From positions 1-64,000 of the forward strand of contig NW_020846644.1 of NCBI RefSeq assembly GCF_003704095.1: a stretch of DNA of 64,000 bases, written 5' to 3'. The position numbers and the translations under genes were made by a program. The notes beneath the pieces were generated by a model. It was given only the letters and a program-made list of their open reading frames with translations, made no database searches and had not been told where the DNA came from. Below, one piece after another: positions 1,206-49,358 of this stretch. Position 1 is the first letter of the stretch; each line of letters starts with the position of its first letter. This stretch comes from Pocillopora damicornis (lineage: Eukaryota).

Positions 1206-1305
1206 NNNNNNNNNNNNNNNNNNNNNNNNNNNNNNNNNNNNNNNNNNNNNNNNNNNNNNNNNNNNNNNNNNNNNNNNNNNNNNNNNNNNNNNNNNNNNNN
1301 NNNNN
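1206..1305. other. Assembly gap (100 N)
   Basis: Run of N. Confidence 1.
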
Positions 1306-1594: not shown

Positions 1595-2082
1595 AGAATT
1601 TAGATATATGAAAATTCACATATTTGCACTGCGGTGGAGAGATGAAATTAGAAGATCCTCGCAGCTAAGAACACTACTGAAACGAGTAGTTGTAAATAGG
1701 ACCTGAAAAAAATTCAGGCCCGTACGGGATTTTAACCCATGACCTCTGCGATACCGGTGCAGCGCTCTACCAATTGAGCTAACAAGCCAACTAGGAGCTG
1801 GTCAATGAATTGGGTACAAATAAACATCCAAGTGAATGAAGAATTAAGATATATGAAAATTCACATATTTGCACTGCGGTGAAGAGATGAAATTAGAAGA
1901 TCCTCGCAGCTAAGAACACTACTGAAACGAGTAGTGTAAATAGGACCTGAAAAAAATTCAGGCCCGTACGGGATTTGAACCCATGACCTCTGCGATACCG
2001 GTGCAGCGCTCTACCAATTGAGCCAACAAGCCAACTGGGAGCTGGTCAATGAATTGGGTACAAATAAACATCCAAGTGAGGA
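1595..2082 (-). mobile_element. Head-to-tail dimer of a 245-bp tRNA-containing (SINE-like) repeat with a 12-bp TSD
   Basis: Units start at 1594 and 1839 and are near-identical. The minus strand carries A-box TAGCTCAATTGG and B-box GGTTCAAATCC-like sequence. Flanked by tataggacatta at 1583-1594 and 2083-2094. Confidence 0.8.
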
Positions 2083-6124: not shown

Positions 6125-6327
6125 CCCTGTAACTCCCATGAGTGACCAAGACAGAATTTCTCCTTACGATATTAATACAATATCGACCAGTCAAGTGATG
6201 AGAATAAAGAAAACTATCGATTTGGGGATAATTAGTTGATCCAATACAAAATTCTAGTAACTAGCATCATAAGAATTGTATGGTTCACAGTAAGGAGAAG
6301 TACAAATTTGGTCTGGGAGTTAAAGGA
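6125..6327. mobile_element. piggyBac-like MITE (TTAA target)
   Basis: TTAA|ccctgtaactccc...gggagttaaagga|TCAA. Removing it restores the Penelope peptide PKRSIKITDHF. Confidence 0.8.
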
Positions 6328-6365
6328 TCAAGATCACTGATCACTTCACTTGCACCTCCGCCATT

Positions 6366-8176: not shown

Positions 8177-8480
8177 ATTGTCATCTACTGCATAACTTGT
8201 ACTTATTGCAGAAACTCATACATTGGTGAAACACGAAGACGACTTGGTGACCGATTCCGAGAACACCCTCGCGACGTAGAAAGATGGACGCATCCAAACC
8301 AGTCGCTAGACCCCTTTATCTCCCTAATCATTCTAAGCAGCATATGGCTTTTTGCTGCCTTTCTCTGCATCAGACAGTTCGGGAAAGCCGCAAAGCTCTA
8401 GAAGAAAAACTTATCTTTCAAATCGGTACTCTTAGTCCCCACGTTATCAACGAGAGCTTTTCATTCAACTAGTTTATTTT

Positions 8481-8919
8481 GTAACGGCTAAGAATATATG
8501 AAAGTCATATATTTGAACTGCGGATAAAGACGTGAATGAAAGTGATCCTCGCAGTAATGTGCACTACTTGAGCAGTAGTGAAAATAAGAAAATGTACGGG
8601 ACTTGAATATTCACGTCTTTTCACTACTGTTCAAGTAGTGCATATTACTGCGAGGATCACTTTCATTCACGTCTTTATCCGCAGTTCAAATATATGACTT
8701 TCATATATTCTTAGCCGTTTATTCGTCACTTCACGGGTTTATTTGGAACCAATATAATGACGAGCTTCAAGGTGGCTTGTTAGCTCAGTTGGTAGAGCGC
8801 TGTACCGGTATCGCAGAGGTCATGGGTTCAAGTCCTACACGGGCCTCAATTTTTTTCAGGCCTTATTTTCACTACTGCTCAAGTAGTGCAAATTACTGCG
8901 AGGATCACTTTCATTCACG
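8481..8919. mobile_element. tRNA-containing repeat insertion with an inverted duplication and an 11-bp TSD
   Basis: TSD tagtttatttt at 8470-8480 and 8920-8930. ~102-bp inverted arms 8483-8584 / 8618-8719. tRNA-like A/B boxes at about 8774-8846. Confidence 0.8.
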
Positions 8920-9124
8920 TAGTTTATTTTTGTTTTATTTTTGGAATGTCACCACATTCCATGAACAGCATAGCTCGATTTTCTGCATATAGACCCACTC
9001 ACAACTCACAATTCCTCCAATCGCTCTAACGAAGGACTAACGCTCGAAACGTCAGCTTTTAAGCTCTTCACGATGGCCGATTATGCTATCAACTCAGTTG
9101 ATAATACTAAATTACCCTGTTTTA

Positions 9125-9157
<33 letters not shown>

Positions 9158-9698
9158 CAAACTTACCCTATTTAATCAAATGAGAGTTCAGTTGCATTGT
9201 TTAAACAGTCCAAGAGCTGAACATTCTCCACTTCTAAACTACTGCTTGAGCAATTCAAAGTCACTTAATTCATGCTTGTCCTTCTGATAACGAAAATCCC
9301 TTAAGACTTTAGGACGACGTCGCAAAACTTACTACAAAGCCAATAAACACGTCAGAAATTTGCGAATGGTAATCTGAGTTGTGCACTTAGATTTAGGTAG
9401 CCACTGGGGTGTATTCCTGAACCTTCCAAGTCTGTAACCTCCTAATATAACACAAAAGGGCCACGAAATCATAGTTTTCACCTCCATTTAACAGAGTGCG
9501 GTATGGAATAGAATTTTTAACCTTACTTCTATATAGCATCATTACAATGTCATTGCGACATAACATAATTTAGATTTAAAAAATGCCGGAAATCAAAATA
9601 ACTTTGTTCGTTGACAGTTTTCCTTCAAAAAAATCACTGCACTTGAAACAAATTTCAAAGAGAAGTATGGTTCACTCGAGAGTAAACGACATCCAACA

Positions 9699-15600: not shown

Positions 15601-18600
15601 AAACGTAATGATCGATTTTGTCCTCGATCTCACGCCGTAACAGAAAAAGCTTTTGAACATCTGTAAACTCCGAGCGCTTCGCAGTAAGTGAAATTTTCAA
15701 TGAATCTTGGGATTGTTCTCAAGTTTAAGGATTGTAAATTACAATTTTATGAAAAACGAAGGTTGTTCCGTTATTTCAGTGTGAATCCTTGCATGCCTGC
15801 CAGTCACTGGCGCCGCTTGTTGAAACTAAAACGAAAAAAAAAACTCTTTTAAGATTATCATTGGCTTCTTTGTCACCCCACCACTATTCTTAGCAACAAA
15901 GGTCGCCATTTCGTTTGTTTATTGCTCGCCACTATCAAATGCACTCAGAAGCCTAAAATCGAAAAAAAGTTTACAGGAATCGAACAATTGAGCGAGCGAG
16001 CAAGTGTCATTCCCCACATCGTATCTAGAACTCGCTGTTGCGCATGCGCGCAATTCACGAGTTAAAAAAGGTGACACTGGCCGAAAAATATATTGTTCTA
16101 GACGTTTCGTTTAGCCAGTGTCAACTTTTTTTTTTCTTTTTACCAAAAATTTTAAATAGAAGCAAATTTGATTCCCTGTTGTTTACACTCTTACCGCCTT
16201 CAGCTTGAATGGGTTCGACGATTATTCCTGCAACTGGTTTGCCTGCATTATTACTATCAAAGATAGCTTGACGAGCCTATTGTAGAGAAACAAGAATAAT
16301 AAATAAGCAGTTTAAGACTGCATGCAGCTACTGATATTCCTTTAAGTTTCACGATGCGCCTATCACATCAGTTAAGACATTTCAGCAAGGAAAAGTACTG
16401 TTTTTTATCATAGGCAATCCTTAAATGATCGTGAGGTGTTTATCGTCTTCTGCTGTCTTCTATAGTGTCAGCAATAAGCCTGATATCACAAAAGGGGAGA
16501 ACTCAAATGTGTATCGAGTTAGAATGTCAAACTAATAAGATAATCCAAATAAGATACTCCAATTGGGTCGAGATCGGAGGTCTATTGTTATATACCGTCA
16601 CCTACTCGTTCTCTCATTCCTATAACCTAATGGCTACTGTCTCCCATTATAGACTGAGGCAGTAGCCACAACAAGGATGATAACATAATATGTTATTGGA
16701 CATAACCCACAAATCACAAAAGGTGAGAACTCAAATGTGTCTCGAGTGCGCATATCGAACTACTAAGATGGTCCGAAACAAACAGTAAGTAGCACTGGGA
16801 AACATCGGGTCAACATAAAGTCAAAATCGGAATTCTAAAGTTACCATCGCTCACTCTCTCACTCACTCACTCATCTCGAAGATTTACGAGTCTCTTATAG
16901 GTGGGAGAAACCACAAAAACAGAACCACAAGACGTTGTAAGAATTGCAATAGCACCATCATCAGACTTCAAACTATGCCAAATTACATTACCATTTCCAA
17001 ACATTTTTCCTCTTCTGCTTTGTTTTCTCTTTCATAGTTTGCAAGTGGATATTTCAGGACAGGAAATGGCGCCTTCGGCCAATCAAATGTAGGAATGTCT
17101 ACTCTTGCCATTGCTTTTGATCGAGTGGTAGAAAGAGCACCTGAGCAACAAAGAACAAATTCATTGCATTGTGACACTTTCACTGTGCGCACTGATTAAT
17201 GTCTGTTTTTCTACCCCGGAGTTAGACTATTGTTCTCATTGGTTCGTTGGTTCTGTCTAGCCTATGAAGGAGAGATGAAGGGGGGGGGGGGAAGGGTGAG
17301 GAATGTTACCTTTCATTAAATTCAATATCCTATTTTTCCAAATACAGAACTCATTTGAGGTGCAGTCTTAACTATCCCAGCTATATAACGGTGTCACCAA
17401 TCGGCTGTCTCGCGCGAGGGAAGCCCTCTAGAGGGAACCAACGAGTTGCTACTGAGAGAACGCTGGACATAATTTCCACTGTTATTAATCAATCAGATTA
17501 ATTTATCCTAAAATTAAAACCGCGATGTCCAAAGCACCAATCTGTTCACCATTCAAACGCTCCTGGCCAGCCATCATTCCAATGACACGAAGTACTCAGT
17601 TGATACTCACAATTTGGTATAATGACCTTCCGCAACAAGGTTGAGGTCAAAAAGTTAAAAGTCTACATCAACATAGAAAAGAAACTTGCAATAAACGAAG
17701 CAGACGTTTAGAGACGTCTTTCTTAACATTTGAGAATTTGATTGCATTGCTACAATAATAAGTAAAATGTTCTCATTTAAATGTCTGGTAAAGAACGTCT
17801 TTTTGGTGTTTTTGCAGATCAATGCGTATTCCACAACAGTCTTGAATGTGTCCTAGTATTTAAAACAATTTAACTTACCCAGAGTTCGACCATGGAATCC
17901 TCTCTCAAAACCAAGAATTGTTAACGGTGGTGTGCCAGGAGCCTAACAGAGTACAGGAAATTCCCTTTTGTTAAACTATGTAAAAACGAACAAATGTTCT
18001 AGGCATCAAAAATCACTTGTTCCAACTACAAGAGTTTCTGACCTGATGTTTCGAGCGTTCGCCCTTCGTTTTTCGCTCAGACGAAGGACTAATGCTCGAA
18101 ACGTCAGCTTAGAAACCCTTTACGGTGGCCAATTTATATTATCAAGTCAGTTGATTAAACCAAAGAAACGTCTACAGCTGATGATATTTTCCTTGGACAC
18201 CTTTGCAACTAAAGATCTAGCAGGAAATCCTTATAGCTCAACCCTCGAGACAGAATAAATTTGTCTATTGTGCCAAACCCGCAGGTACTTAAACACCCTT
18301 CGACACTGTCTATCAGCGATTTGACCCAAGTCGCTGGTCCACAACTATTTTTCTTTGCATGCCACTTTCGTTTTTATATTTGGTCTCCACTAGTAAATGT
18401 CGTCGCGCAGTAATCGGCCTGTGGATAGCGTTGTGGAGCTATTTCAGCTCGAGATGGTTTCAGAAATACCCTTTAAGTACAGTAGTCTTACGAGATAAGC
18501 GTTCGACGGAGTTCACACTCATTTCAGTTGTTTTAGTAGTTTACTGTTTGGTCTGATGAGGTCATCGTTACTTTTTTTCTTGGGGAAGACATAGCCGGCC

Positions 18601-29400: not shown

Positions 29401-30141
29401 AAAACAAAGAAGCCTCTAGTAATTGGGTAAAGTATGGCCTTATAAAAAACAAAATTTCATTACTTTAAGACAGAAGCATTCATAAGTACTTGCATAGTAC
29501 TCGCATTCATAATTTGTGCAGATAATTTTGCTTCTGCAGCGGATGACATGTTAATTAATGGATCTATGAGGTCAGCCAGAAAATTTCATATATTTTTGTG
29601 GCTCAGTTTAAATAGCAATGTCTATTTTTAGTTTTCTTGTCGAATAATACATGTGAATATTAGTATACCGGTAGTTTTCAATAAATTAAGGTTCCAGTTT
29701 TAGTCTCTGGTGATACATGATTTCTCCTGATGATGTTGGAGTCTATATGTTCCACAAGTATTGTGGTCTTAAGTTGCATTTTCTTCTCTTTTGAGGTAAC
29801 TAATTTTGCAGTGGTTGAAGTTTTTAGACATCCAAGATTTTTTCAGATACCAGTAACCCATTTTTTCTTGTCACCTCTTCCCCCCACCTCCACAGACATG
29901 CACACCCACCATAATTTTAGCAAATGCTCCCTAGATAGGTGGTGTATATTGTATTGAAAGAAAAAATGTGTTCAAATTTTTAGTAAACATTCCACTCTCA
30001 AACCTCTTGTTTTAATCATGATGGTAATTGATGGGATGTTGTGATCAAATTTTTTTTTATTTCTTTAAAATTTGAATTATTAGTTGTGACAGCTTAATTA
30101 ATGTCTTCTCATTTTCCTTTTTCTCTTCAGGCAGATATGAT

Positions 30142-31222
30142 ATGAAAATGCTCTACACATCTTTGACACAGCTTCATTTCCAAGACAACCAGAGAATAAA
30201 GCATGATATTTGTAACCTGGAGTTCTCCATCCCTTTTCAATCAATTTTAAAACATCTAGACAAAAAAGCCACAACCTCAGACAAACTAGCTTGTGTCTAT
30301 ATATATGGTGAGCCAGGTTGTGGACGTTCATCAGTCTTGCTGGATATCTGTGAAAAATCTATTCAACGCAAATTGTTAGCATCAAAGGTGTGTGGTTTAA
30401 GAGTCAGAAAAGGATGTACTCTAGAGTCCCTCTGGAATTTGCTGAGTGAAATCGCAAAGGAAAGAAAGGACCGAGAGACAGCATCTACACTAACAAACTC
30501 AAAAGTCAAGTTGAGCAAAAAATACAAAGTTGCCCAAGCTTTCATTTCAGCAAACTTCCAGTTGATTTGTGTGGATGATGCAAGTGCTGATGGTGGGATT
30601 GTTTGGTCTCATCTTTCAAAGCTGTTGAACAAAACTAATATTGGTGTTGCTCTTGTTTCCAGTGAGCAAGAATGCAACTTTCCTTTCAAAGAAGAAATAA
30701 AGGATTGGCAATTACTCTCTGTGAAGGTCAAAGGTCTTAATGTGCAGTCATTTACACTGAATGTCAGAGAGTTGTATTCTTCTCTGAAGTTAAATGAAGA
30801 AATGATCTCTAAGATACATTGCATATTGAATGGCAATCCTAGAGCAGTCGATATTTTGATTAATGTTTTCAGGGAATATAACCTTCCAGATAAAAGTTTG
30901 CATTGTGTTTTTTTGTCCTTGGAAAATGACGGCATGGTGCACGAAATTGGAAAAGATGATCTCAATCCCATTTTATTGGTCCTTCAGTTTGTATTTGAAC
31001 ACCTAACTGCTTTTGAAAAAAGAGTTTACAGCCAGCTCTGCCACCTGCGAGAACCTCTTCCAGTTATTCATCTTTCAAAGGAAGCAGAGAAGCTTATAAG
31101 GCTTGGGTTGGTAACTAATCAAGCCAGTAGCCTATGTAGCAGCAAACAAGCGATTAATTTAGCATCCATATCAGTGGCTCAATGCTTTCAGCTGAGTGCA
31201 GCACAACTTCTTGATTTCTCAG
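30142..31222 (+). CDS. STAND/NB-ARC-like NTPase-encoding segment (360 codons) of the ALPK1-like gene
   Basis: VYIYGEPGCGRSS (Walker A-like), LICVDD (Walker B), ALVSS (sensor-1 position), LNGNPRAV (GxP), and a winged-helix-like FEHLTAFEKRVYSQLC..LIRLGLV. Confidence 0.75.
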
Positions 31223-34200
31223 GTAATTTAGTGTTAACAACCGAGTTGAAAACGTAAATTAGCCACCGTAAAGNNNNNNNNNNNNNNNNNNNNNNNNNNN
31301 NNNNNNNNNNNNNNNNNNNNNNNNNNNNNNNNNNNNNNNNNNNNNNNNNNNNNNNNNNNNNNNNNNNNNNNNNTGAAATGTAAGAGTAAATGGAATGCGG
31401 TCAGTGTTATCCTTCTCAGCCGTTTGTTTCATCATTTGAAACTTGAACTTGATTTTTGAAACTTGGAACTTGATTTCTCAGCTGAAGATGAAGCACCAAG
31501 CACCTTTGAATTGTGGTATGCTCTCTTGTCAAGTAAACTTCAGACACTCATTGCTGATGCAGAGAGGAATGCATGGCCTTTTGTCCCTGAGAAATGGTAA
31601 GTTGATTGATAAAAATTCTAATCTTTGTTGTTTTCGAAAATTCTGGTCGTGTCCACCATTTCTTGTCCAAATGGGGTTTAGTCTCTCAAGGAGCTGTTTT
31701 AGGTGTTGCTTCAAAATTTAAGGGAAACGACTACTATATAAGGCAATGATTGTGTCCCTGCACAACCTTAAGATTAATATTGATCTTCCCTGGTTGTTTT
31801 GGACTTGAAAAACATTAAACACTGGCAGATAATCCACACTTTTTCCCCAAAATTGTTCGTAAAAAAATAAGGGTTGTGGCTTATCTGCAATGCATCCAGA
31901 AAAAGTGCAGAAAATATTCATAAGTTAACACCATTCATCAAAAATTTCTACTTGTAAGTCTGTCTAGCAAATTTTAAAACCAGAATTTCATAAAGGTATA
32001 CCAGGGTACACACTGATCATTGCTTATGCAAGGTTGGAGGCTCCTCGAAGAGCCATTTGTGTTCATGAGCATTAATGTGGTGGCCAACACAAGCGAAGCA
32101 AATTTTCAACGACAACTATGACTTTTACAAATGAAGAAACACTATGAAGCGAAGATATATTTTACGGACAAGCCTTGAATCGTTTTATTTAACGTAGTCA
32201 AAGTATTCAAGGACTTATCGTAAACTGAAATATGAAATTATATGGAAGAAGCTAAGCTAAATTCTAATATACGAACCAACATTCCAATTATTCCGATATA
32301 AAGGCTAGATCCAAAAACTAGCTAAAACTCAAAAAGAAACTCACGAAAAGACTATCTTGAAAGAATAAAGGAGAACCGCTTGAAAACGAACTCTAACAAA
32401 AACTAATAACTAAATGGGAAAAACGTGTAGTGCTCTAACGAAACGTGAACAACGTAAGCCACGTGTTACGAGGTTGCGAAAACGAGCGATAAAGAAACTA
32501 GTGTAAAAACTAGGAAAAACTACCAAAAGACTAGATATATAGGCAAGCACAAGGAAAGGAACATAGGCACTTACATAATAGTCCCGCTTGTAAGAGTTTA
32601 ACCAAAACGAACTTCAGGTTAAGGTGGGCAAAAGGCGCTCTTCCGATAAACACGTCTTATCGTTAGCCCAAAGCAAGACAACTAACTAAAATGCGGTTCT
32701 GGGTGGAACTTAAAGATCACGTCCCTAATGGACAAACAGTAATGTCATTATTGCGGTTTAACACATTTAACACGAAACAAGCTTACTGTGAATCAATGCC
32801 CGGTGGCAAAGGCGTGGTAGCCGTTATAATTAGTTTATATTTATTGCTGACTGTTGAGTAGTGTTAAACTTTCTTCACCGACTTAAGAGACCTTTTAACC
32901 AGTTTAATGTCGTCTTCCTTGAGCAGCTAATTATTACTCGGCAAGAAATCTCCAATACTTCACAAAGCAGTAAGTTTAAACTATCACTTCAAAAGTTTTA
33001 TTAATCCATTAGGTACCCCTTTCCTAACTAAATGCAAGACTACTATGCTACAGAAAAATTAAAGATTTCCTGTTTACTTAATGCTGATTGGCTGTGATAG
33101 AAGGCATTTTTCATTATTGGAAATTAGGTCTTCTGCTGACAGTCCTTTTCATACATTGCCCGCAGGGGTTCGATCCTGTATCTACACACTCCCACTGCTT
33201 TAGCTGTGAACCCTCATGAATAGCCTGATCCTTTTAACATTGAAAGCTTAGTATTGGCAATTTACCTTAACACGAATGTGCTATCTGTCCAAAAGTAAGA
33301 ATTGCCAGATAATACGTATAATCCATGATGGATTATTTGATTCAGTCTTGTGGCTACTCATACCCCAGACAACTCCAATTGGGGAATGCTGACAGATTTC
33401 TGCGGCATTTGTTAGAAATTATTGATTAGAAATGAACAGCCAATGTCTCTACTACCGCTCGTCCTTTCTGAGACAAGTTGAATGAGGTGTGTGACCTGTT
33501 TGATGCAGCATGACCAAACTTCTTTGGTTCCAAACAAAGATTAATGCCAAATTTTCATACATTAGGTAGCTTCCCCAACCAGGCTTCCAAGCGCTTTAGA
33601 TCTTCCCTTGGAATTTGATGTACGCGCTGTATAAGTTTATATAAATCTAACATAGTGAAAAGTAACAAAAAATACACTCTTGAATGAGATAAATATACTA
33701 AAAATTCTCATTGTTCACGCACTTAAGAGGCTCAGTATATAAAGCTAAAATCTATTCTGTCAACTATTATATCACTGTATTTATTGGTTACACGAAAATC
33801 TCTTTACAGTTTCACAGTTCTGTGAAATAACCCATTTCTAGGAATGTTCAAGTGTTAACCTTGTTACTTTCGGCCCAAATTACATGTTCAGTTATTTATC
33901 TTGGTCTAAGTATGCACAAGACTGTGGCGCTATAATCAAAATTACAGTCTATGCTTAGTTCTTCTACTTACTTCTTGGCATCTTTAAATATGGATCTTAA
34001 TTGACTTTGTTCTTTTTTCAGCTGGTATGACTTTACGAGTTTGATGTGTTGGTCTTTAGAATTGTTGATGTAGGGGGCTATTTTCAACTTGGTGTTCTTG
34101 TATAACTTTTCTAATTCGACTCATCATTTCCCTCCTTTTTTCTGGCTGTAAGTAAAGTAATGGTGTTAATTTATACTTGTGTTTTTTGCTACAGTCACTG

Positions 34201-37200
34201 ATAACTTTCCTTGTTAGTCAGTCGAGTTCTTTGAGGAGATTGAGGCGCCAGTTGGTGGTCCACATACAGTACTGTTAGACAGGTACAGTATAAACATTAG
34301 TGGCACGGACTTTACGTGGTATTGACAATGGAGAAGTCCAAACTGCCCAAAGTCGATTCTTTCACTCCTTGGAAGCTTCTTCAATAACTTTATTCTCTAG
34401 ATGCCGAGTGTTCTAGTACTTTCCTAGGAATTTATAATGATCTTCATTGCCTATAAGGGGATAAAGCAGTTGTTACTTACAGGCATTTCAGTGGAGTTGT
34501 CGTTGATTGCTAGTGTTCCTTGCTTCATATGCGTTGCAGCACACTTGTTGATTCCCCATTCTAAACCAAAGTCTGCAAACATCTTCTTCAGCTTGCTTAT
34601 CACAGTTACTGCCTTTTGTTCAGATTGATGGCAAGTTTTCAAGTAATCAACAAAAAGGGCATAGGTGATTTTTCTGTGTGGGGCATGTGATAGTTGTTAT
34701 CCTTTGGTACTCCCAAGTTACCATGCAATTGGTTAAGTGATGGAGTAAAAAGTCGCACACAGAAAGACTTTGAAGGGGCCAATGGTTTCTTTGCCTTGAT
34801 GGATGAGGTCTGCATTTATGCCGTGCATTTCAAGAGTTTTGGCGATCCACTGGTGCGGGACAGAGTCGAATGCATTTTTCACGTCTACCCAGGAACAGGG
34901 TAGGTTCTTCTTGTGAAAGTGGGCGTCTCCTTATATCATCTTATCAATTAGCAGGTTGTCTACGGTGCCCATTGATTTTATTTTGCCTCCTCTTTGATCA
35001 ATTTGCATTAGATTGTACTTGTCCTCGTGCACTGGTAGTTGGTGGTCAATCACTGACGTGATGAGCCTATATAGGGTGTTTAAACAGTTTATTGGTCAAT
35101 GGTCAGAAGCGGATGGGTCGTCTCTCTTCCGAATCATAACACTTCTTCCTATCATAAGCCAAGCTGGTATCTCTAGTCTCTCAGTAAGTATGGTGTTCAG
35201 AGCTGTTGTGATGTCTCCATCAATGGTATCCATTTCCTTTATCCAATAGTTAGTGATTTTGTCTTTACCTGGCAAAGACCAGTTTATCTTGTTTTTAATG
35301 CTGTTGGTGATCATTTCTTTCGTCATCTTCATTAGATCACTTAGGTGTTTAATGTGTTTTTTAAGGGCTGTTTCAGTATCCTTTATCCAATCTGCTTCAA
35401 TAGGTACTTCGCTTGCACTCTCCCATATTGGTCTCCAGAATACTTTAAATTCTTCTGTTATTGTTGTTGCTGCAGTGGGGGTGGTTTCTTGAGTAGCAGA
35501 AGATGGCTTTTCTTTACCTATATATTGTGGCTGTTAGTTTGTTTCCAATGATTTGACGATGTTATTTAAATGGCTGTAGAACGAACTTTCATCTACATCA
35601 AACCACTGGTTGGTCTTGAATCTCTCATAGGCTGTCTTCTATCTTTTCTTCTGTCTTTTCAGGGCTCTGATGGTGTTAATCTTTCTTTTCTTTAAATCTG
35701 TCAAATTTGCGATGGTTATTCTTCCTTAAATGTCTTAAATTATTTAGGATCTGTTTTTCTTCATTCTCGACGTTAGTTGATGATTATTGCGTATTCTCTT
35801 TAATTCTTTGCATATCTGAGAAATTTGTTTTTGAAGATTGTTAATTTTTCTCTCTATGTTAATCATCCATCGCGGTTTCCCGCTAGTTTTGGTGTGTTTA
35901 CATCCTGCTTATTCAGTCTCAGTATCTTTCACAATGCCATCGTAGATACACATGGCTGCTTGCGTTATTTGTGAAATTCAATTAAGATCTTCAACTGTCC
36001 AGTCACTGCTTTGTTGTTGTTCACTTGTTTGATCTTCGATTTCTGTCTCTTTATTGTTTGGTCTTTGTTTCCTGGTTTCTCTTTGTTCTTGTAGCTCATT
36101 TGTTATGCGTAGTGCACATACCTTTCAAGTTTTATTTAGATGTGTTAATTTTTCCCTTAAAAATTTGTGCTGTTTTTCCAAGATTTGTATCCCTTCTCGT
36201 TCCAAAACTTTAACGTTGACAGCATGATTCCATTCTTTCTTCCTTTTTCATTAGTAGGTCATTCTTTCGATGTGTGTTGTTGTCTAGCTTTATCTTTACA
36301 TGTTAATAAATCAATGCACATTTGCTCCGTCCATCTTGTCCAACCATGTTGGATTCTTTCCGCACTCACTTTGCAAAGAATTGTATTTCTTGAGTCACTT
36401 TGAGCGGGCGATAGGTTGTAGTTGATGTTAACTGTCATTAAGATGGAATAAATTTCCAAAAAACACATTTCAAGAGTGTTTTAGAACAAATTTTTACGGA
36501 GCGCGAAGACTGTGGTGTTTATTTTTGTTATCATTATTACTATTATTATTGTTTAGTTTTAAGCCCTTTTTTGATGCTCTTTCCAGAAATTACTGCAATC
36601 GTTCATCATGTGTTGCTTCATCTTCCGTGCCGATTACGTCATCCATTATGACCTCAACACCATCCAGGTCTTCAATCATCTGGGCCATGGTTCTTTGGAA
36701 GATTTCCGGGGCACACTTTACGCCGAAGGGCAGCCTTGTGAACCTGTAACGACCAATTGGAGTGTTAAAGGTGCATAGAGGCGAGGACTCTACATCTAAC
36801 TTTAACTGCCAGAAGCCACTTTTGGCATCTAGGATGCTGAAAGTATGAGCACATTGAAGACGGCTAGCAACTTCATCAACAGTTTTCATAAGGTAGTGAG
36901 ACCTCTTCATGGCAGCATTTAAATCTCTAGGATCAATGCACAATCTCACTGAACCATTGGACTTCTAAACTACTACTAGTGAGTTCACCCACTCTGTCGG
37001 TTCCTCTTGGCGCACAATAACTCCGAGCTTTTTCATCCTTTTCAGTTCTTCAACAACTTTCTCTCACTGAGGTACTGGTATCTTCTTTGGGGAATGTACA
37101 ACAGGGGCAGCACTATCAGCCAGTTCAATGCGATATGTCCCAGGCAAGCATCCTAATCCTTTGAACAACTCTGGATAGTCATCTAACTCCACCGTTCTTG

Positions 37201-40200
37201 CAGGTGGTGTGTCGCTGGTCAGCTGGTGAACTCTCTTTAGTAGGCCAAGTTTGACACAGATGTTTCCACTAAGCACTAATTCCACTTCGGGTTCTACAAC
37301 AAAGAACTTGACCTCTTCGACATTATCTTTGTATTTTTCGCTTCAACACCACTTCTGCGCAAGGTGTTAGTCTGTGCTTTGAGAGGGAAATCAACATAGT
37401 GTTCGTCTTTGTCAGCGGTGGTCTTCGCCTGTGATTGTCTTAGATCTTCGGTGACATAGCAATAGCCTTTGCACCAGTATCTAGCTGGAAGCGAACTTCA
37501 GTATCTTCCACTAAAATAACTTCATAAAACTGCTCGTCTTCTGGAACACGGCTTGACTTAACTGAGTAAACAAACAGCTAGTCATCTTCGCTCTCTTCTT
37601 GGTCGGAGTCCCCTTCTGTTTCCTGGTCGGAGTCGGCTACTACTGAATGGACCTCCTTGGATAAACAGAGTTTTGAGAAATGATTCATCTTTTTGCAGTG
37701 TCTATACTGTTACCCCATTGCGGGACATTTCTTGTGGGCTTTGTCATAACCACACCGTCCGCATTTGTATTTCGATTCGACCTCCTCCGCTTCGGCGGTC
37801 TTCTCGGTTTTCCTTTTGCTTTTATTTGAACGCTTCTGACGATTCCAGGGCGGACGGTTGGGTCTTCGTCACTGGCGAGCTTTTTTAGAATGCTGAGATT
37901 TGTTTCGTAATTTCGACTGATTTCGATGGCCTTTTCACATGTCTGCTTGATCCATGCATTTCTCACGCACTTTGGAATGTTTACAACGAAAAACGATCGC
38001 GTCTCGAACCATACGTTCTTCCTCTTGATAGCCACAATCCTTAACTAGAATTTTCAGATCTGTAACAAACGAGTCGAAGCCTTCATTGTCTCCCTGGCGT
38101 CTTTCGTTAAATTTCAAAGCAGCCATTATGTGGTTTTTGCGTGGCGCACAATATTCTTCGAATCTCTTCAGTACGACCTTCAATTTCGCGGCATCTTCGG
38201 GTTTTGCGAATGTGAATCCTTCGAATACATCCAACCCTTTATCGCCTACCCACAACTTCAGGTAGCTCACGTGCTCGTTCTCTTCTTTCTTGTGCAACGG
38301 GCCGTCAAGAATGCGTTGTGCTTGTCGGCTGAAACGGCGCCATTCTTGATGCTATTCTTGAGCGGTCCACGATATCTCCGGAGGTTTGAATTTCGCCATT
38401 GTGGCTGTTTTCACAATCTCCGGGAATTCTGTGTTCTATTTCCAGTCAGCTGTTAGCTTGATAGCTTGTTTTTCGGCGTGGAAAAGAATCTCTTCCTGAC
38501 ACCATGTATTAACACTCATTAAAAGATGGCTGACAACTCTAAGTCATTGTTCCATGTGCTCAGTCACGTGAGATACATTGTGACTGACTAGGGGGGGGGG
38601 GAAAGTAAACCTGTTACATTTTATATCACACAAGCCTGCTGCTTTGGACACTCAACTACCTTCTCACTACAGGGTACCCACCCTCATGCTGAGCAGTGGC
38701 AGGGCATGAACATAACTGCATTTCAGTAATCCTTATGTGGGCCAAGACCCAAGCAAGAGAGAAGAAATACTCAGAGAGAACCATCATAAAGCTGAATAAC
38801 TGAAAACTTGGCTAGTGAAAATATCCAACTTCCCCTATTTTTGCCAATTTTATAATCTCATTTACTGGGAAAGCAAAATCTTATTGAGCTATCCCATTCT
38901 TACAGGTACCAGCTATCCTAAAACAATAACATCTATCTTTAACCCTTTCACTCCCAAGATTTGATTGTGAATTCTCCCCTCTTGCTGCTACACAATTCAT
39001 GTAAATTAGTTACAAGAATGTGGTGTGATGGTCACGTGATTAAAGTACTCAGGGGGCTGGGGTGGGTTAGCTGTCTACCCCTTACACAAGCCATGAAGCA
39101 ATTCATAGAAAGAACCACTCAAATAAAACTAAGAATAATCTTTCAAATTAAATTAAGTCCATGTTTATCTCCCTCAATCAATATTATTAGTTATTAGCAG
39201 AGCTTTGTACCTAATATTTTTACACAAACACCAGACAAAGTTCCCCAATGTGTACCCAACAAAGGCTCATGCTTGAAGAATAAGCTTGTGCACATTCAAC
39301 ATGGTTAAAACTCCCTCGTTTATTGAGGTACAGTTTCTTTTAAATGCTCCAATGTAAGCATTTCTAGTGAACCACTATTTGAAATGTTATTCAATGTAAA
39401 TTTTTCTTACAGGCAATACTCTTCCAGTGTTGGACCAGAAGAGAGGTACAATATTAAGGATCTACTTACAGCTAAGAATTCTACTGCTCCGCTCTTAAAT
39501 GAACTTGACATTATGGAGGTGGGTATTTTGTAAATTTTTTAACCCTGTTATAGAACCATAAAACTTTACACAAGTCTACCTTCACCCTGAAAGAGACTCA
39601 ATTTTGTTGCAGTGTCAAATACATTGAACTGTTTATATTCCAGCCGTATGTTTTATGATCAAATGCAGTCAGTTAAAATGGTTCATATATAACAACAACT
39701 TGTAGAAAGTTGTTCAGAGTTATTTTGCATTATTTTATTTTTAATAGTCTTTTAACAAAACCCTGGATTACTATATTAATGAGGATTTCAATGCTTTCTG
39801 TCAATTGTTTCAAGGATGATGTCAAGTATTTAAAATCTATTTACAAGGATGTACTTACCAGGAAAATAGTAGTCACCCAAATCACATTTACTACATTGTA
39901 GTAGAGGTCACACTCATGACTACAATCTCAAGATGACCAGTAATACTCTGGCGTGTAGCAACTGGAACATGTGCTGTATGAAGTGTTGTGGCTCATTTAT
40001 TGCCTTAAATTAAGAATGCAGTGTGTAAATGCTAAAAGTAGTAGTATATACATATAACATTGTTAAATAGGGTAAATATTCGAAGGTTGTATTTTATTTC
40101 TGTAAGTCAGGTTTTTCAATTGCAATAGAGAATAACAAACAATTTATTATTATTATTATTATTTTTATTATAATTACTCAAGATTTTGTAGAGTACTTTG

Positions 40201-43200
40201 TGCTGGACTTTGGCAAGGTTTTATTTTGGTGGTGGCAGAAGATGGTGGATCAGGCAAACTATTGTATCATTTGGTGTGCTTGTCAACAGCGGAAAGACAT
40301 TGGTTACTCCAGATTTTGGTGGATTTGTAACATTTTACATGAAGAGAGAAGCACATAATTCAAGTTAAGAGTAAAAAGAGAAAGAGCATTTAATTTGCAC
40401 TTGAAAGGAGAAGAGGTTTGAAACAATACATTGAAGCAAGCTCTACAATTACAGGTTGCCAGAATTGACATTCCAAAAGTTGATCTCATATTTGCATATT
40501 GATGAAGTCAAGCTATAACTATGATGTTAAAGGATTATTTTGTCCCCAAAGTGAATTTCCCTTTGTGAGAAAATTGTGTATTGAACAATTCCACTAGATG
40601 ACTCTCCTCTGTCAAACTATGAATAACACTATATTAAATACAAAATAAATCACTTAGATGTACAAAAAGCTGTTATAGACAAGCTTACACATCACATCTT
40701 AGTGTACATCTATTGAATAACATACAAAATATTTTATCCTTCACTTGTATGGCGCGGCACCGGCTATTCATAAACCATAAGGAACAAAGAATGGTGGAGG
40801 AAAAATTAGCAGTGGTAGCAGTAGTGCTGGTGGACCCAGTCGAGACGTCTTCGTAGCTCCAATTATGCAATTTCAACGGCAAATTTGATTTGTGAACACA
40901 AGAAGCAAAGTAGTGGTCTGGTAACGGTGGTCATGGTGGGCTAGAATTGCTTGATGTTCTAACTAATTAAGGGGTTACTTGCAATGTTATGGGGTACCAG
41001 ACTCTGAGCTGTTAAAGTGAGTCTTACAAGTCTGTGAGACAACGGTTTGCATTTTTTGTTTACAGTTAATGTCAAGGGGCTGGTGAGGGTCAGCCAGTGG
41101 TTCTACACTTAACCAACATCTGATGCATGTGCTCGTCGTACTCCCCTCCTGACATCCCCTAACTAACAATACCATCAGCAGTCCCATTAGCAGCCAGATG
41201 GGGAACTGAGGGTGGATGGGTGGCTTGGTTCTTTATCGAGTGCAAATATCTATTAGCGACATTTGGCATCCACAAGGGAGAGAAAATAGGCACCAGCTAT
41301 TTGAGAGAAGCTCTAAGGGGGTTGGGATCATGGATGCTCTCAGGAAAAATCTTTGTATAGATCTGTAGCGTTGAGGCATTTTCACAGTTTACCATTTGGA
41401 TTTCCGTGGTACACCAAACTGCTGACTTAGGCGGTTGGTTTACTTTCTGTTATACCTTAAGATTCCATATCAGCCACCCCGTTTCATTATGTCGTCATGC
41501 TGACCCAGTGGTATGTATGGTTGAGCATGTACGACCGGGCGCACTTCTGAGTCACGTGCGTTTCAAATCGATCCTAAGTTTTCGTTGGTTTCGTGCGACC
41601 CTCTGCATTTTCCAAGGCCCAGCTGTTTCAGGTTTCTAATCCTTGAATGTCAATCTATAAAAATAAAATTATTTTTCTCCGACTTCTTTTAGTATGGCCC
41701 ACTGATAAGCAGGTGGCATTATTGTTTGAATTTGACCAATTCATTTCGCACATTTGGTGCATTCCAATTATTATTTGCGGTTTCGAATCCCACAGCTGTG
41801 TTCTCTTATGAAATGTGTTAGACGGCTTGAAGATCAGAAATGTCGACTTGTAACCAAAATCACCTTGTCTCCAAATTAAATGAACTGGACAAATACATAA
41901 ATCAAAGAACAAAAGAAAAACCCTAAGGGTAGCTTCCCAGTGCTCACTCCGCTTGTTATGTGACCGGAAGTGCTTTTAGATCACTTGGCTGGAAGTGAAC
42001 ATTACATGCAGCGTATTTTACTGCAAGCACGACAAAGCAATCACTTGGTTGCGATTTCGCCGTTTCCACGGAGATGGTCATAAGTCATGGGGATGGTCAT
42101 AAGCCATAGGATTGTTGTATTTAAGGAGGCCGTGAAAGCTTATCTGGAGCTGAGTTTGTGTTTATTTATCAACCCTTGCTTATATTATTTTTCTTTCTTC
42201 TCGCAGGAGTGCTTGTTTCATGCAATGAAAGAGAAGAGGTACCGAACTGTGGGAGCATTAGTGTTTGTTATGGACAGATTCACTTATTGGCAAGGAATGT
42301 CTAATAGGACTCTACAACTTGTTGAATATTTGAAGACCAATAGTCCTGACATACCCATTGCACCTCAGTTACTGATAAGAAATGTGAGAATTATGAAAAA
42401 CGCAGGAAACCTACAAGGTATCTGTAAGTTTATTTTTGGAAAGTTATTGTTGTGAAAATAGGCTACTTGTTGGTAAATTGAAATTCCCTATTTTAAGTTA
42501 CGGCCAGAAACACCTTACCTGATTTCGAATTAGCTTCCAAAAGGATTTGAGAAGATGTTTGGTAGTAGATCCTGTCTTTGGTAAAGAAAAAAAAGTTAGT
42601 AAACAGATAATAACCAAGCACCATTCCAATAAATTAATTGGGTATCAAGTGCAATGAGTAAAGGAAATCTTCGCATTTTCACTTTTCAAGCATCAGCCTC
42701 GTATTCGGTCAGTGATTTTCTGTTGCACCAACATTTTGATTTTAAGCGGCGTTTGTCTTGTCAAATAATACCACGCAGTGTTACCATAGGAGTAGCCCAA
42801 ATATTCCTTGATTCATACGGTAAGGCATTGCGTCCATCTGGCCGGAGTAAATATGGAGTAATACACCCCGAGTAATCAACAGTTTGTCCTTGTCCCTTTA
42901 GGTGCAGAGAAAGCTCTTGACGATCTCCTAGATCAGAAGGCACAAATCGGTAAATGGATTTACCAGACGGAACATGATCGTCAACTTGTGAGTGCAGTGT
43001 GCTTTCAAATCAAAGGTGATATTCAGTACAACCTGGGGCAATGGACGAGAGGGGCAAAGCATTTGATGGATTCCGTGGTTTTGTTCAGGTATGCCTGGAT
43101 TCACCCGTCAGAAAAGACTGATTTTAATCGCCATATGGATATCTAGAATCATGTCACGGGGAGCAGAGCGGAAAAAGAATCCTATTGTACCTTGAATATT

Positions 43201-46200: not shown

Positions 46201-49200
46201 ATGAGGCTTACTTTCTGAAACCAACAAGTCTACCTTAGAAGAGTATTCTGTTTTACAAAAGCACAGAATTCTTGCAACGATGTTGATGACACAAGATGTA
46301 CTAATCGAGGAAATTATCTCTAGTTTTTGAGAGAACATCTATTTTGAGTTATTCACGTTTTCAATCAAACGCGCGGCAAGACGAGGGTGTGATATTTTAC
46401 TCACAAGTCTCACAATGGAGAAGAAGAAGAAGACCATATGCAGGCACTATGCGTATGCCACATAAAGTAAAGGATTATGAAATAGAAATATTACTCGCGT
46501 TACTACTCGTTAATTAGTAGTTGCCTTTTTGAGTGAGCTGGAGAGAGTTGTGAGAGATTTCCCTCGAAAGAAAAAGACTGTTTTTTCGAGGTTTTGAGAG
46601 TATATTCAATAATGGCCTCTGCGGGGTTGTGCCTCTTCGAGAGGGTCCTCTTTTCAGAATAGTGGTATGATGAATAACGTTGCGGTATAGTAACGTCCAA
46701 GGAAAACTGCCGTTTGGATGATGTGAAAGGTCTTTCTAGGTATCTAGGTATCAATATAGAACGATAAGATTTTTGAGATGATAGTAATGTAAGGGTATTT
46801 CCTGGAAAAGATAATTTATCGATGGGTACCTTACGGATGTGCGTTAGTGGGTTGAATCCTTCAGCGCAGCGTCCCCTTTATGTTTAAAAGAATGATGATT
46901 AAGGATTATAGTAATTTTTCTCTGGTCAAAAGTACTTGTTAACTGAGGGTTTTCTTTTTTTTTTTTTTCTTTTTTTTTTTTTTGTAGCTGCTATTGTTTG
47001 GAGATATGACTACCATCGGAGTGAATGGAAAGGGGAAAAGACGTTGGCATATGTTGGAGATTTACTCGAGTTGGAGGAAGGCAAAGAGGGAGCACAGAGA
47101 AATGCGTATATGGTTGAATTTGTTGATCAAGAAGATCCTTTGGCAGGGTAAGGTACTTCTTTCAGCATGTCTCGGTGAACTTGCAGTCGAATTTCAAACT
47201 GAAAGACACTTTTATTGTTTTTATTGTTGTTATTATCATAATTGTTATTATCAATACCATTTTCTTTAAGTTTATCACGATCTTTTTTATCCCAGTTGGA
47301 GGATGGAAATATTTTTCTAGTAACTTTTTTCCTCGAAGTTTGCAGCGACTATTTTTCTCAAGTTGCATCTTGTTACAGAGTCTGTTTGAGCTCAGACAGA
47401 GGCTTTGATTTTTTATTAATGAAAAACTGGACCATTGCCAGAAGTTTTGTTGGAAGTTACACACCTATTATTAAGTTAATACTGTGGATAAACTGGCTTC
47501 ACGAGGGCATCTTAAAGAACGATCACTACTAAAGTTCATTCAAGCAGTGTGAGCTAATCATGAATTTCAAGTTATGATTTTTTCTGCCATTAACTAAACA
47601 TATTGTCTGAGATTTGGTCGAAGATTTGTATGAGGCTGGATTGATTGGAATGTTATGGTATTGGCAACAACAAGAAAACTACCGGTTAGGGGTGCTTTAT
47701 TGATTGACCAAATTTATAAGATGCTATTTGACGGAGTAATATTGGTGAGTTGTTTCAACAATATACTGGTAATCTTATTTCAGGTATGTGGCGAAGTGTT
47801 ATAAGAAGCCCAGAGATATCAAACAGTATCAACAGGATATTATTTGTCAGATGACAGCTCGTCATTACGTCACACTGTTCAACCAACAGCTATATCTTGC
47901 AGGTGTGATACAGATACTCAATAATACTCTTGTGCGCAAATTTGAGTTTAATCAAATCTATAATGTATTCTCTTTTATGCGTTTTATACTTTCAACCCTG
48001 CGACACATTGCGCGATTTGCACTGCTGTTTAAGGAGGATGTCGCCATTTATGGGCTTACCAGACAAAAATGTTTTTGGTCCCCTATTGGAAATATGTCTA
48101 TCATTATAACAGTCACATGGTCATAAAATTACTTTTGGGTTCCGATTCGTTGACTTTTTTGGCGATTCATAAGGTTAGCGTAGAGAATAATGGGAATTGG
48201 TGTTGTATGCAGTTTCGGCGAAATTAACCGCGGAAATCTATTATTTGTATTACAAGAGACAAAAGCTTTTATTTGGCGTGAAGATATGGTCGATGCTTGA
48301 AAATGATGTACCCATCACGTTTAAAGCAAAACCCATTGTGCCCAATGGCTAATTTCAGGTCCATTGTCGAACAGGACATGGCGGATCATGGATCTAATTA
48401 TCCGCTGTCAAATCACTCAGGCCAGTGGAAGGACCTTAAGATTCTCGGGAAATAGAATTAACTGTTTTTTTCGAGACATGCTGATAGCTTTTGTTATTAT
48501 AGAGTTTAGATGTTGTTAATAGCTGTTAATAATAACCCGTCAAATGTTTTGACCCTTGTGCGATTGGTTGTAACGTGTCACATGACTGAATATGCCTTGG
48601 AAAATTTGGGGAATATCCGGGACAACTACTATATTCCCCAATTTTAATACCTCACTTCCTTTCAGAAGAATGTAACTTCGAAGGACTTAGGTGTTTCGTT
48701 CAGCTGGGGTTCATTGCGGCGCAAGACTAAGAAATGGAAGTAATGTACAACGCAGTTTGTCTTTCACAGAATAATTTCTTAGTAAACATAAACGCTGTAT
48801 GAACATTTGCCGTGGGTATAACTTTTAACTGAGTCGACCGTACATTTACAAAGTAAGCTTATCCTCGTGTTTAGAAACCAAAACCATTAATTAACGTTTA
48901 TATTCCTATCATTCCTAGCTTTGAATGTGGGCGATATTCAGTTCCTTCCTGTAGTGTTACTTCAACTTGTTGACGTGTATGGCTCCGTCAGTGGTGCCGT
49001 ATATAACGTGGAACCCTACATGGCAGGGGAATTCGTCAAACTCACCAACAACTTTGGCTTTGTAAGAAGAGAAGACGACATGTCCGACGTAGTGTTGGCA
49101 TTCAGTCACTTCACATACGAAGAATCAAACCAGCAAATGGTGATCGTCGACATTCAAGGTTGGACTCCAGATACTACTGACAAAGCAAAGTGCACATTTC

Positions 49201-49358
49201 TCACCGACCCTCAGATTCACTCGGTGCGATACCAGTGTTTTGGAACAGGGAATTTAAGTCAGCGTGGCATTGACAGTTTTTGGAAGGAGATGCATCCGCA
49301 TTGTAACGACATTTGTATCAAGTTAGGACTATCCAGGCCGAATATCACATCAAAATGA
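30142..49358 (+). CDS. ALPK1: ALPK1-like alpha-kinase with an N-terminal STAND/NB-ARC-like domain, about 1158 aa
   Basis: Segments 30142-31222, 31482-31596, 39413-39518, 42207-42417, 42902-43088, 43409-43616, 44372-45221, 46988-47147, 47784-47902, 48919-49358 (3477 nt, GT-AG, phases consistent, no stops). ALPK1 N-terminal signatures WPFVPEKWQY, VMDRF, PIAPQLLIRNVR, PDTKGISSSL, YTPLF. Kinase motifs GAQRNAY, YVAK, QMTARHYV, VEPYMAGEFVKLTNN, VDIQGW, LTDPQIHS, HPHCNDIC. The start codon is uncertain (acceptor at 30130). Confidence 0.9.
31223..31468 (-). mobile_element. Antisense Penelope-like insertion (spans the 100-N gap 31274-31373) with a 13-bp TSD
   Basis: 31223-31273 is the reverse complement of the PLE tail seen at about 1425-1465 and 18118-18160. 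TSD cttgatttctcag at 31210-31222 and 31469-31481. Confidence 0.8.
32076..32575 (-). mobile_element. Possible LTR (~500 bp)
   Basis: TGT...ACA termini, a minus-strand TATA-like motif and AATAAA, and a weak purine tract next to it. No partner LTR seen. Confidence 0.35.
33200..36500 (-). mobile_element. Decayed RLE-type (R4/NeSL-like) non-LTR retrotransposon
   Basis: NWSLPGKDKITNYWIK, IPAWLMIGRSVMI, PINCLNTLY, LFVDYLK (FxDD position), FGLEWGINKCA, YKFLG. Many stops. Ends are approximate. Confidence 0.8.
36555..38577 (-). mobile_element. Ty3/Gypsy LTR retrotransposon 5' half (gag-protease-RT pseudogene, PBS, short LTR)
   Basis: gag LKLWVGDKGLDV..FEEYCAPRKN, protease FQLDTGA, RT RLCIDPRDLN..LDAKSGFWQ..RLPFG..IMDD. 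PBS TGGTGTCAGGAAG at 38492-38504. Candidate LTR 38505-38577 with tgtat/ataca ends. Confidence 0.9.
45765..46416. repeat. Two diverged ~240-bp direct repeats
   Basis: ctggcgcacagctgtttt...gagggtgtgatatttt..ctcacaagtctcacaatg at about 45765-46008 and 46180-46417. Confidence 0.8.

Follow-up and report, generated by a model that had tools for sequence, protein, structure and literature searches.

A Penelope-like retroelement inserted antisense into a coding exon of a coral STAND-ALPK1-like gene provides the splice donor of an exactly removable intron

A Penelope-like retroelement (PLE) has integrated into a coding exon of an immune-receptor gene of the coral Pocillopora damicornis. Since the end of the element supplies a splice donor and the duplicated target site supplies the acceptor, the insertion can be removed exactly from the RNA and now behaves as a newly gained intron. 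Available data support a lineage-specific intron gain, with exact splicing in some transcripts, inferred from public open reading frames (ORFs), and retention in others. We analysed a window of 64,000 nt (contig NW_020846644.1, assembly GCF_003704095.1, positions 1 to 64,000), to which all coordinates refer. The starting point was a sequence-only reading of this window, which had described a 13-bp direct repeat around an insert beginning with 51 nt of antisense Penelope tail, and a donor and acceptor whose use would restore the frame. This observation was confirmed, with the corrections given below.

Anatomy of the insertion

The 13-nt repeat CTTGATTTCTCAG occurs exactly twice in the window, at 31210-31222 and 31469-31481, even if one mismatch is allowed. 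In shuffled sequences the mean was 0.28 matches, and 4 of 100 shuffles reached two. The upstream part of the ancestral exon (30131-31222, plus strand) follows an acceptor AG at 30129-30130 and contains the ATG at 30142. It encodes a STAND/NB-ARC-like NTPase module, for which Pfam gave AAA_22 (E 3.3e-5) and NB-ARC (E 4.7e-4), both under their cut-offs, and the first residues homologous to the ALPK1 N-terminal domain. The ORF 30142-31257 comprises 371 aa and ends within the insert at a TAA (31255-31257). Position 31210 starts a codon (CTT GAT TTC TCA G|GT), while the second repeat copy reads CTT GAT TTC TCA GCT GAA, and joining 31222 to 31482 therefore gives LLDFS|AEDEAP in frame.

The new GT-AG intron (31223-31481, plus strand) comprises antisense element, filler and repeat copy 2. 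The last three bases of repeat copy 1, CAG, form the exonic side of the donor. The terminal AATTAC of the element tail reads GTAATT on the gene strand, resulting in CAG|GTAATT, while repeat copy 2 provides the pyrimidine-rich stretch and the acceptor AG. Donor and acceptor are offset by exactly the insert plus one repeat copy. The downstream part of the ancestral exon (31482-31597, plus strand; AEDEAP to WPFVPEKW) is followed by a conserved 7.8-kb intron with GTAAGT at 31597/31598, and we place the end of this exon, in correction of the sequence-only reading, at 31596/31597 (TG|GTAAGT). The next exon lies at 39413-39518 (plus strand; QYSSSVGPEE to DIME).

Two further points of the initial description need correction. 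Homology to other element tails extends 3 nt (CAG) into repeat copy 1, so the duplication proper may be 10-13 nt long. In addition, the 41 nt at 31428-31468 are not element sequence but filler at the 5' junction. This filler contains a 20-21-nt tandem duplication that resembles the target and runs into repeat copy 2, and it has no significant match elsewhere in the window. By inference, it probably supplies the branch-point region.

The assembly gap (31274-31373, 100 N) is flanked on both sides by the same element in the same orientation and collinear order. It therefore lies inside the intron and has no bearing on the spliced frame. In two fuller copies of the element the two assembled ends are 757 and 835 nt apart. 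By this length estimate the real gap is probably about 0.65-0.73 kb, and the intron, assembled as 259 nt including the 100 N, probably about 0.85-0.95 kb.

Identity of the element

The 51 nt at 31223-31273 are the 3' tail of the element on the minus strand. Within the window they match, as reverse complement, the tails at 1427-1463 (92% over 37 nt), 9066-9115 and 18118-18164 (about 78%), and elsewhere in the genome they are 96% identical over 51 nt to the tails of the element copies L007 and L008. The right side (31374-31427, minus strand, reading ...KQTAEKDNTDRIPFTLTF) is a fragment of the element's ORF from the linker between the RT and GIY-YIG domains, with 96% identity to copies L004 and L008. 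This marks the 5'-truncation point of the copy, and reads of other copies diverge after 31427. The family has at least 150 matches in the genome, and 128 RNA reads of other copies continue beyond the 3' end of the insertion.

A fuller copy (L010) contains a 430-aa ORF with RVT_1 at residues 16-149 (28.8 bits, cut-off 29.6, E 1.2e-6) and GIY-YIG at residues 378-417 (18.5 bits, cut-off 22.6, E 0.0025), with the IPFT.TFHP motif of the insert between them. Order and co-occurrence of both domains fit a canonical, endonuclease-positive PLE, although the scores fall just short of the curated cut-offs. GIY-YIG was also weak in two other copies, and the nearest Atlas clusters carry RVT_1 + HTH_animal + GIY-YIG (score 0.95). 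Pfam searches with fragments of the degenerate element copy of the window and with the L004 ORFs returned no RT hit, PDB searches with element ORFs gave nothing useful, and copy L009 was uninformative since it consists mostly of N. No hammerhead ribozyme was detected by Rfam at the gathering threshold in the window, or at E<=1 in 17950-18200 or 8900-9250, a search that did not extend to a full pseudo-LTR of this family. Only a long hairpin is present at 18042-18107, and two miRNA-model hits at 18029-18121, far below the gathering score, merely reflect it.

Homologues are uninterrupted at the insertion site

The sequence-only reading had named an old, element-free intron in orthologues as an outcome that would contradict it. 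All 19 aligned, more distant homologues (29-68% identity) read straight through the site in one ORF and end at PEKW, and seven of them are located on genomic contigs of 262 kb to 1.69 Mb. The closest (P0021, 66% identity by BLASTP and 68% in the alignment) reads ...QLTDFSAEVKAP... The ancestral state is therefore one exon without an intron, as seen at the protein/ORF level. The count leaves out P0003, which ends before the site, and P0007-P0017, which were weaker hits of the search. No paralogues were found in this genome, in which each exon matches only once. A search of all protein libraries found no long protein containing this STAND module, all 18 hits being 448 aa or shorter, so public gene models could not test the junction.

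Homology to ALPK1 continues across the insertion site. Residues 343-419 of the spliced ORF P0055 align to residues 9-86 of the solved ALPK1 N-terminal domain (5z2c_A, E 4.7e-13), the window ORF 42087-42452 aligns to residues 106-162 (E 1.6e-7), and the alpha-kinase profile PF02816 matches 48936-49316 on the same (plus) strand (E 1.3e-31). That these parts belong to one transcript is an inference.

Spliced and retained forms

Among 30 listed near-identical (about 99%) public ORFs, of a cluster of 148 members, 27 carry the insertion and end in the element-derived peptide, whereas none is an unspliced intact ORF. The other three, P0053 and P0061 (436 aa) and P0055 (438 aa), occur in Logan assemblies on 6, 1 and 3 contigs, respectively, and read LLDFSAEDEAP...PEKWQYSSS. 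They map to 30142-31224, 31469-31597 and 39414-39530, thus joining 31222 to 31482 and 31597 to 39414, and also lack the conserved 7.8-kb intron. Their RNA origin is inferred from this exon structure and from their Logan-only source. All three stop 2-4 codons after exon 3 by reading into the next intron, so they do not represent a fully processed mRNA reaching the kinase domain. Over the upstream exon P0055 is identical to the disrupted ORFs P0034 (92 contigs), P0044 (on a 2.2-Mb contig of another assembly) and P0050, while P0053 and P0061 are identical to the disrupted P0048 (30 contigs).

Alignment of reads and contigs from four sequencing runs revealed no 31222-31482 joint. The DNA runs X2 and X11 each gave single contigs from the exon into the insert at ordinary depth (8.5 and 8.7), and contigs from the right part of the insert into the downstream exon, with no sign of an empty allele. 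The raw RNA run X21 had only 0-4 reads on the exon and none near the junction and is therefore uninformative. In RNA run X17, a contig of 1177 nt (depth 13) joins 57 nt of another exon to the acceptor at 30130 but reads through the donor to 31249, 27 nt into the insert, and X17 shows no depth on 31475-31750. In that sample the retained form dominates, which would give the 371-aa STAND-only product.

Discussion

We propose that a 5'-truncated copy of an abundant Penelope-like retroelement integrated antisense into a long coding exon of a STAND-ALPK1-like gene, in the lineage of this coral and probably in Pocillopora. Integration most likely occurred by target-primed reverse transcription, leaving a 10-13-nt target-site duplication and 41 nt of filler, but this step is inferred. 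The splice signals and the exactness of removal are directly evident from the sequence, whereas splicing in vivo is demonstrated only indirectly, by the spliced public ORFs. Splicing is not complete, since some transcripts retain the element. We assign this reading a probability of roughly 0.78.

The sequence-only reading had considered either a recent retroelement-mediated intron gain or a disrupted allele with a STAND-only protein, and its interpretation is supported, as both outcomes turn out to be real. Its argument that the STAND and ALPK1 sequences were one exon is supported as well. However, 'recent' needs softening, since the insertion is shared by all 27 genomic-type variants listed, which differ among themselves, including inside the element-derived codons. 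It therefore predates the diversification of the sampled lineages.

It is unlikely that the insertion is merely disruptive and that P0053, P0055 and P0061 derive from empty-site alleles segregating in the population. The retention seen in X17, the missing downstream depth in this run and the absence of a joint in the runs examined would agree with this view, and an empty-site allele could hide among the other 118 cluster members. However, none of the 27 genomic-type variants is intact, the two DNA runs show no branch or joint at the site, and both spliced haplotypes are identical over 359 residues to abundant disrupted haplotypes. The same two haplotypes would have to exist both with and without a retroelement that cannot excise. 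It is even less likely that the three ORFs are encoded by DNA, as a partly processed retrocopy or an allele that lost both introns by recombination with cDNA. The longest contig holding P0053 is 10,372 nt, long for an RNA contig, and all three ORFs run into the next intron. On the other hand, this assembly has only one copy of either exon, a contig of DNA run X2 continues from the downstream exon into the 7.8-kb intron, and two independent events would be needed, since the form exists on two haplotypes. Even then an exactly spliced RNA would be required as template.

We rejected two further readings as very improbable. An old intron invaded by the element was considered because elements of this family are common in introns of this genome, but no evidence for it was found. 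None of the 19 homologues has an intron here, and the intron consists of the element, filler and one repeat copy, with nothing else assembled. A scaffolding artefact with a coincidental repeat might be suspected from the gap, since this element family breaks assemblies: another gap at 1206-1305 abuts a tail at 1306-1463 (see also PMC8557442). In contrast to this, the ORFs of the homologues are continuous, the spliced ORFs join both sides, the ALPK1 N-terminal domain aligns across the junction, the element pieces on the two sides are collinear, and the same disrupted ORF is found on at least 233 contigs of other assemblies, one of them 2.2 Mb long.

Cleanly documented intron gains in animals are rare, and the mechanism is usually erased by time. 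Here, the uninterrupted exon in relatives, the element with its truncation point and target-site duplication, the origin of donor and acceptor, and both RNA outcomes are still legible, within the limits given above. A retroelement landing in a coding exon need not kill the gene, and Penelope-like elements, which dominate many invertebrate genomes, can seed introns. In practice, the assembly gap and the in-frame stop will make gene predictors split or truncate this STAND-ALPK1-like immune gene, and its annotations in Pocillopora should therefore be checked. A more far-reaching possibility, for which we see little support at present, is that the antisense 3' end of this very abundant family is a ready-made donor, as the family's own sequence reads CAG|GTAATT on the opposite strand. 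Antisense insertions next to a pyrimidine-rich target would then be pre-adapted to exact removal, and the family would act as a retroelement 'introner' in Pocillopora, with further exonic insertions now serving as introns. At this locus, retention versus splicing would switch between a STAND-only protein and the full receptor.

Relation to known systems

Canonical endonuclease-positive PLEs have RT followed by a C-terminal GIY-YIG domain in one ORF, an arrangement to which the order of the sub-threshold matches in L010 corresponds. High copy number, frequent 5' truncation and trouble in short-read assemblies (PMC8557442) are shared, and many copies and transcripts continue past the point where this insertion ends, as expected from internal initiation of reverse transcription (PMC11167929). 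The present family differs in that no hammerhead ribozyme was detected in the copies of the window.

The mechanism, with one splice site carried by the insertion and the other co-opted from the target-site duplication, so that the element plus one repeat copy is removed and the mRNA is restored, is already known from introners, the intron-generating transposons of Micromonas, Aureococcus, dinoflagellates, fungi and others (PMC11282704), and retrotransposon-derived introners are reported (PMC12130899). Introners are defined as families that have generated many introns in a genome and are mostly short non-autonomous DNA transposons, while we describe a single case from a 5'-truncated autonomous-type PLE in a cnidarian. 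'Penelope' does not occur in the main text of either paper, although their supplements might list Penelope-derived families. Literature searches found no previous description of intron gain by PLEs, as judged by title or abstract, and no listed paper on ALPK1 together with coral.

Singular transposon- or retrotransposon-derived introns are reported from Oikopleura and Drosophila, likewise as isolated gains attributable to a mobile-element insertion. Here, both the ancestral empty site and the two RNA outcomes are visible, and the element class is Penelope-like. In maize, Ds/dSpm elements and retrotransposons inserted in exons of waxy and adh1 alleles are removed from pre-mRNA by splice sites in or near the element, which attenuates the mutation. 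In those laboratory or landrace mutants removal is usually inexact, whereas in the coral gene it is exact to the nucleotide and the insertion appears fixed.

Structure of the insertion and of the element

The 13-mer CTTGATTTCTCAG occurs at 31210-31222 and 31469-31481 and nowhere else in the window, even if one mismatch is allowed, and the direct repeat and restorable frame described in the sequence-only reading were found as stated. The upstream copy closes a long open reading frame with its ATG at 30142 and its stop at 31255-31257, encoding 371 aa, and this frame starts at an acceptor at 30129-30130. The codon phase at the upstream copy is CTT GAT TTC TCA G|GT, while the downstream copy reads CTT GAT TTC TCA GCT GAA GAT, so that cutting out 31223-31481 gives LLDFS-AEDEAP in frame. 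The downstream part of the exon ends at 31596/31597 before GTAAGT.

The sequence between the repeats includes, on both sides of the assembly gap, pieces of one repeat family. Positions 31223-31273 are the reverse complement of tails of this family, which were seen in the window at 1427-1463 (92%) and at 9066-9115 and 18118-18164 (about 78%), and are 96% identical over all 51 nt to two copies elsewhere in the genome (L007 and L008). Positions 31374-31427 are the reverse complement of the ORF of the family, the minus strand reading ...KQTAEKDNTDRIPFTLTF, and are 96% identical to copies L004 and L008. The family has at least 150 genomic matches. In a fuller copy, L010, one 430-aa ORF gave matches just under the curated cut-offs to RVT_1 (E 1.2e-6, 28.8 bits against a cut-off of 29.6) and GIY-YIG (E 0.0025), with the IPFT.TFHP motif between them, and its nearest Atlas clusters carry RVT_1 + HTH_animal + GIY-YIG. 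An RT followed by a C-terminal GIY-YIG endonuclease is the architecture of canonical Penelope-like elements (PMC8557442). Rfam searches of the window detected no hammerhead ribozyme; for a long, nearly perfect hairpin at 18042-18107, just upstream of a tail of a related element subfamily, they returned only chance-level miRNA-model hits (31 bits against a gathering score of 99). A degenerate copy of the same family at 5085-9115 (+) contains nested insertions, one of which (about 6240-8160) encodes a lysine/glutamate-rich ORF, while another (about 8480-8920) is a tRNA-like sequence (Rfam tRNA 8774-8846, 45 bits) flanked by inverted repeats and is probably a SINE. In addition, two tRNA genes lie 170 nt apart at 1716-1788 and 1960-2032 (-) (Rfam 55-56 bits).

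The copy in the exon is antisense to the gene and 5'-truncated inside its ORF. The 41 nt at 31428-31468 are not element sequence but filler, containing a 20-21-nt tandem duplication that runs into the second repeat copy. Homology to other tails extends 3 nt (CAG on the gene strand) into the first repeat copy, so the duplication proper is 10-13 nt and the junction shows 3 nt of microhomology. When reads and contigs of public runs were placed on the locus, 128 RNA reads from other copies continued beyond the point where this copy ends, which fits the internal initiation of reverse transcription described for a Penelope-like element (PMC11167929).

The 100 N of the assembly gap at 31274-31373 have the same element on both sides, in the same orientation and in collinear order, with the 3' tail on the left and more 5' ORF on the right. 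In two fuller copies these two pieces lie 757 and 835 nt apart, and the gap thus probably stands for about 0.65-0.73 kb of element. Because the gap is wholly inside the segment that is spliced out, its length does not affect the frame of the spliced product. The other gap in the window (1206-1305) also abuts a tail of this family (1306-1463), followed by a short tandem repeat of about 8-9-nt units (about 1470-1560), in agreement with the remark that such insertions trouble short-read assemblies (PMC8557442).

The ancestral exon

Searches with the 360-aa upstream part found homologues of 29-68% identity, which run on in the same ORF through a stretch homologous to AEDEAP...WPFVPEKW and end there or just after, where the window has its conserved GTAAGT intron. 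In our alignment (A1), 19 of 19 such homologues are continuous across the site, leaving out ORF P0003, which ends before the site, and P0007-P0017, which were not retrieved. Seven of the 19 sit on contigs of 262 kb to 1.69 Mb, so they are unspliced genomic ORFs. The closest homologue, P0021 (66% by BLASTP, 68% in A1), reads ...QLTDFSAEVKAPSSF...

The solved human ALPK1 N-terminal domain aligns across the junction (residues 343-419 of public ORF P0055 to 9-86 of 5z2c_A, E 4.7e-13), and the homology continues in a later ORF at 42087-42452 (to residues 106-162, E 1.6e-7). An alpha-kinase domain lies at 48936-49316 on the same strand. Thus, the insertion is inside ALPK1-homologous coding sequence of a gene whose first large exon also encodes a STAND-type NTPase (weak AAA_22 and NB-ARC hits), and the two sides of the gap belong together. 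A second alpha-kinase gene is found on the opposite strand at 55324-59461 (-), tail-to-tail with the STAND-ALPK1-like gene, with four PF02816 exon matches (E 1.2e-11 to 1.7e-4), one of them containing 2 TGA.

Splicing and retention of the element

Two clusters of near-identical (about 99%) public ORFs exist, with 71 and 77 members, of which 30 were listed. Of these 30, 27 are disrupted and end ...LLDFSGNLVLTT(E/G)(L/V)KT, the read-through into the element; they lie on at least 233 contigs, one of 2.2 Mb. The remaining three, P0053, P0055 and P0061, have Logan as their only source, lie on 6, 3 and 1 contigs, respectively, and read ...LLDFSAEDEAPSTFELW...WPFVPEKWQYSSSVGPEE... Mapped on the window, they cover 30142-31224, 31469-31597 and 39414-39530, and therefore lack both the element and the conserved 7.8-kb intron, inside which ORFs at 36590-37285 (-) look, from the ORF list alone, like the reverse-transcriptase part of another retroelement (...FGVKCAPEIFQRTMAQMIEDLDGVEVIMDDV...). 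This makes an RNA origin of the three ORFs by far the simplest reading, although it is inferred from their structure and not from the contigs themselves.

Over the upstream exon P0055 is identical to the disrupted ORFs P0034, P0044 and P0050, and P0053 and P0061 are identical to the disrupted P0048. On this inference, the same two haplotypes thus occur as insertion-bearing DNA and as exactly spliced RNA. Public runs that contain the stretch are labelled coral or marine metagenome. DNA runs X2 and X11 each show one contig running from the exon into the insert at ordinary depth, and contigs from the right part of the insert into the downstream exon, while neither has an empty-site joint. The gene is single-copy in this assembly (234,350,878 bases in 4,393 contigs; 234 Mb are reported for Pocillopora damicornis, PMC6208414). 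At 30287 the window has T (Leu49), whereas the contig of RNA run X17 and 26 of the 30 listed public variants have C (Pro49); the four others (P0040, P0042, P0047, P0051) share Leu, so it is a polymorphism.

Other results speak against complete splicing. No 31222-31482 joint was found in any of the four runs placed on the locus, although raw RNA run X21 had only 0-4 reads on the exon and none at the junction. RNA run X17 gave a 1177-nt contig (depth 13), which begins with 57 nt of an upstream exon joined at 30130, has no depth on the upstream intron, and reads through the donor to 31249, where all contigs stop at the repeat; X17 shows nothing on 31475-31750. Consequently, a transcript spliced upstream but retaining the element exists and dominates in that sample, and it would encode the 371-aa STAND-only product. 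The spliced ORFs also stop shortly after exon 3 by reading into the next intron, and the evidence for processing does not extend to the kinase domain. At 39519-39533 P0055 ends VGIL*, exactly as the intron of the window reads, while P0053 and P0061 end IL*, as if six bases at the very start of that intron, including the donor GT, were missing in that haplotype. This suggests retention of intron 3, or loss of the donor in one lineage.

Mechanism and age of the probable intron gain

The splice signals can be read directly from the sequence. The donor is CAG|GTAATT, whose GT is the complement of the terminal AC of the element, and the acceptor is the AG ending the second repeat copy, preceded by TTGATTTCTC, while the distance between them is exactly the insert plus one repeat copy. 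In contrast, we only infer that integration was by target-primed reverse transcription with 3-nt microhomology, 5' truncation and filler synthesis, that branch-point use lies in the duplicated TTGAT/CTTGAAC motifs of the filler, and that survival of this exonic insertion is owed to its being removable.

The insertion is absent from the 66% homologue, but present in all listed genomic variants, which differ from each other at up to five residues, including within the element-derived codons. It therefore predates the diversification of the sampled Pocillopora lineages and is lineage-specific rather than very recent. The sequence-only reading, which had proposed either a recent retroelement-mediated intron gain or a disrupted allele, is supported in its interpretation, except that "recent" has to be softened.

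Comparison with known transposon-derived introns

The use of one splice site from the element and of the other from the target-site duplication is the mechanism described for introners (PMC11282704). The original work on these elements in Micromonas and Aureococcus is reportedly that of Huff and colleagues. A survey of 8,716 genomes reports introners derived from DNA transposons, LTR and non-LTR retrotransposons, Cryptons and Helitrons (PMC12130899), and "Penelope" does not occur in the main text of either paper, supplements not considered. Single transposon-derived introns in animals, from Oikopleura and Drosophila, are cited by the review (PMC11282704). We therefore assign the present case to this mechanism, and what it adds is a singular, exactly spliced, Penelope-derived intron in a cnidarian immune-type gene.
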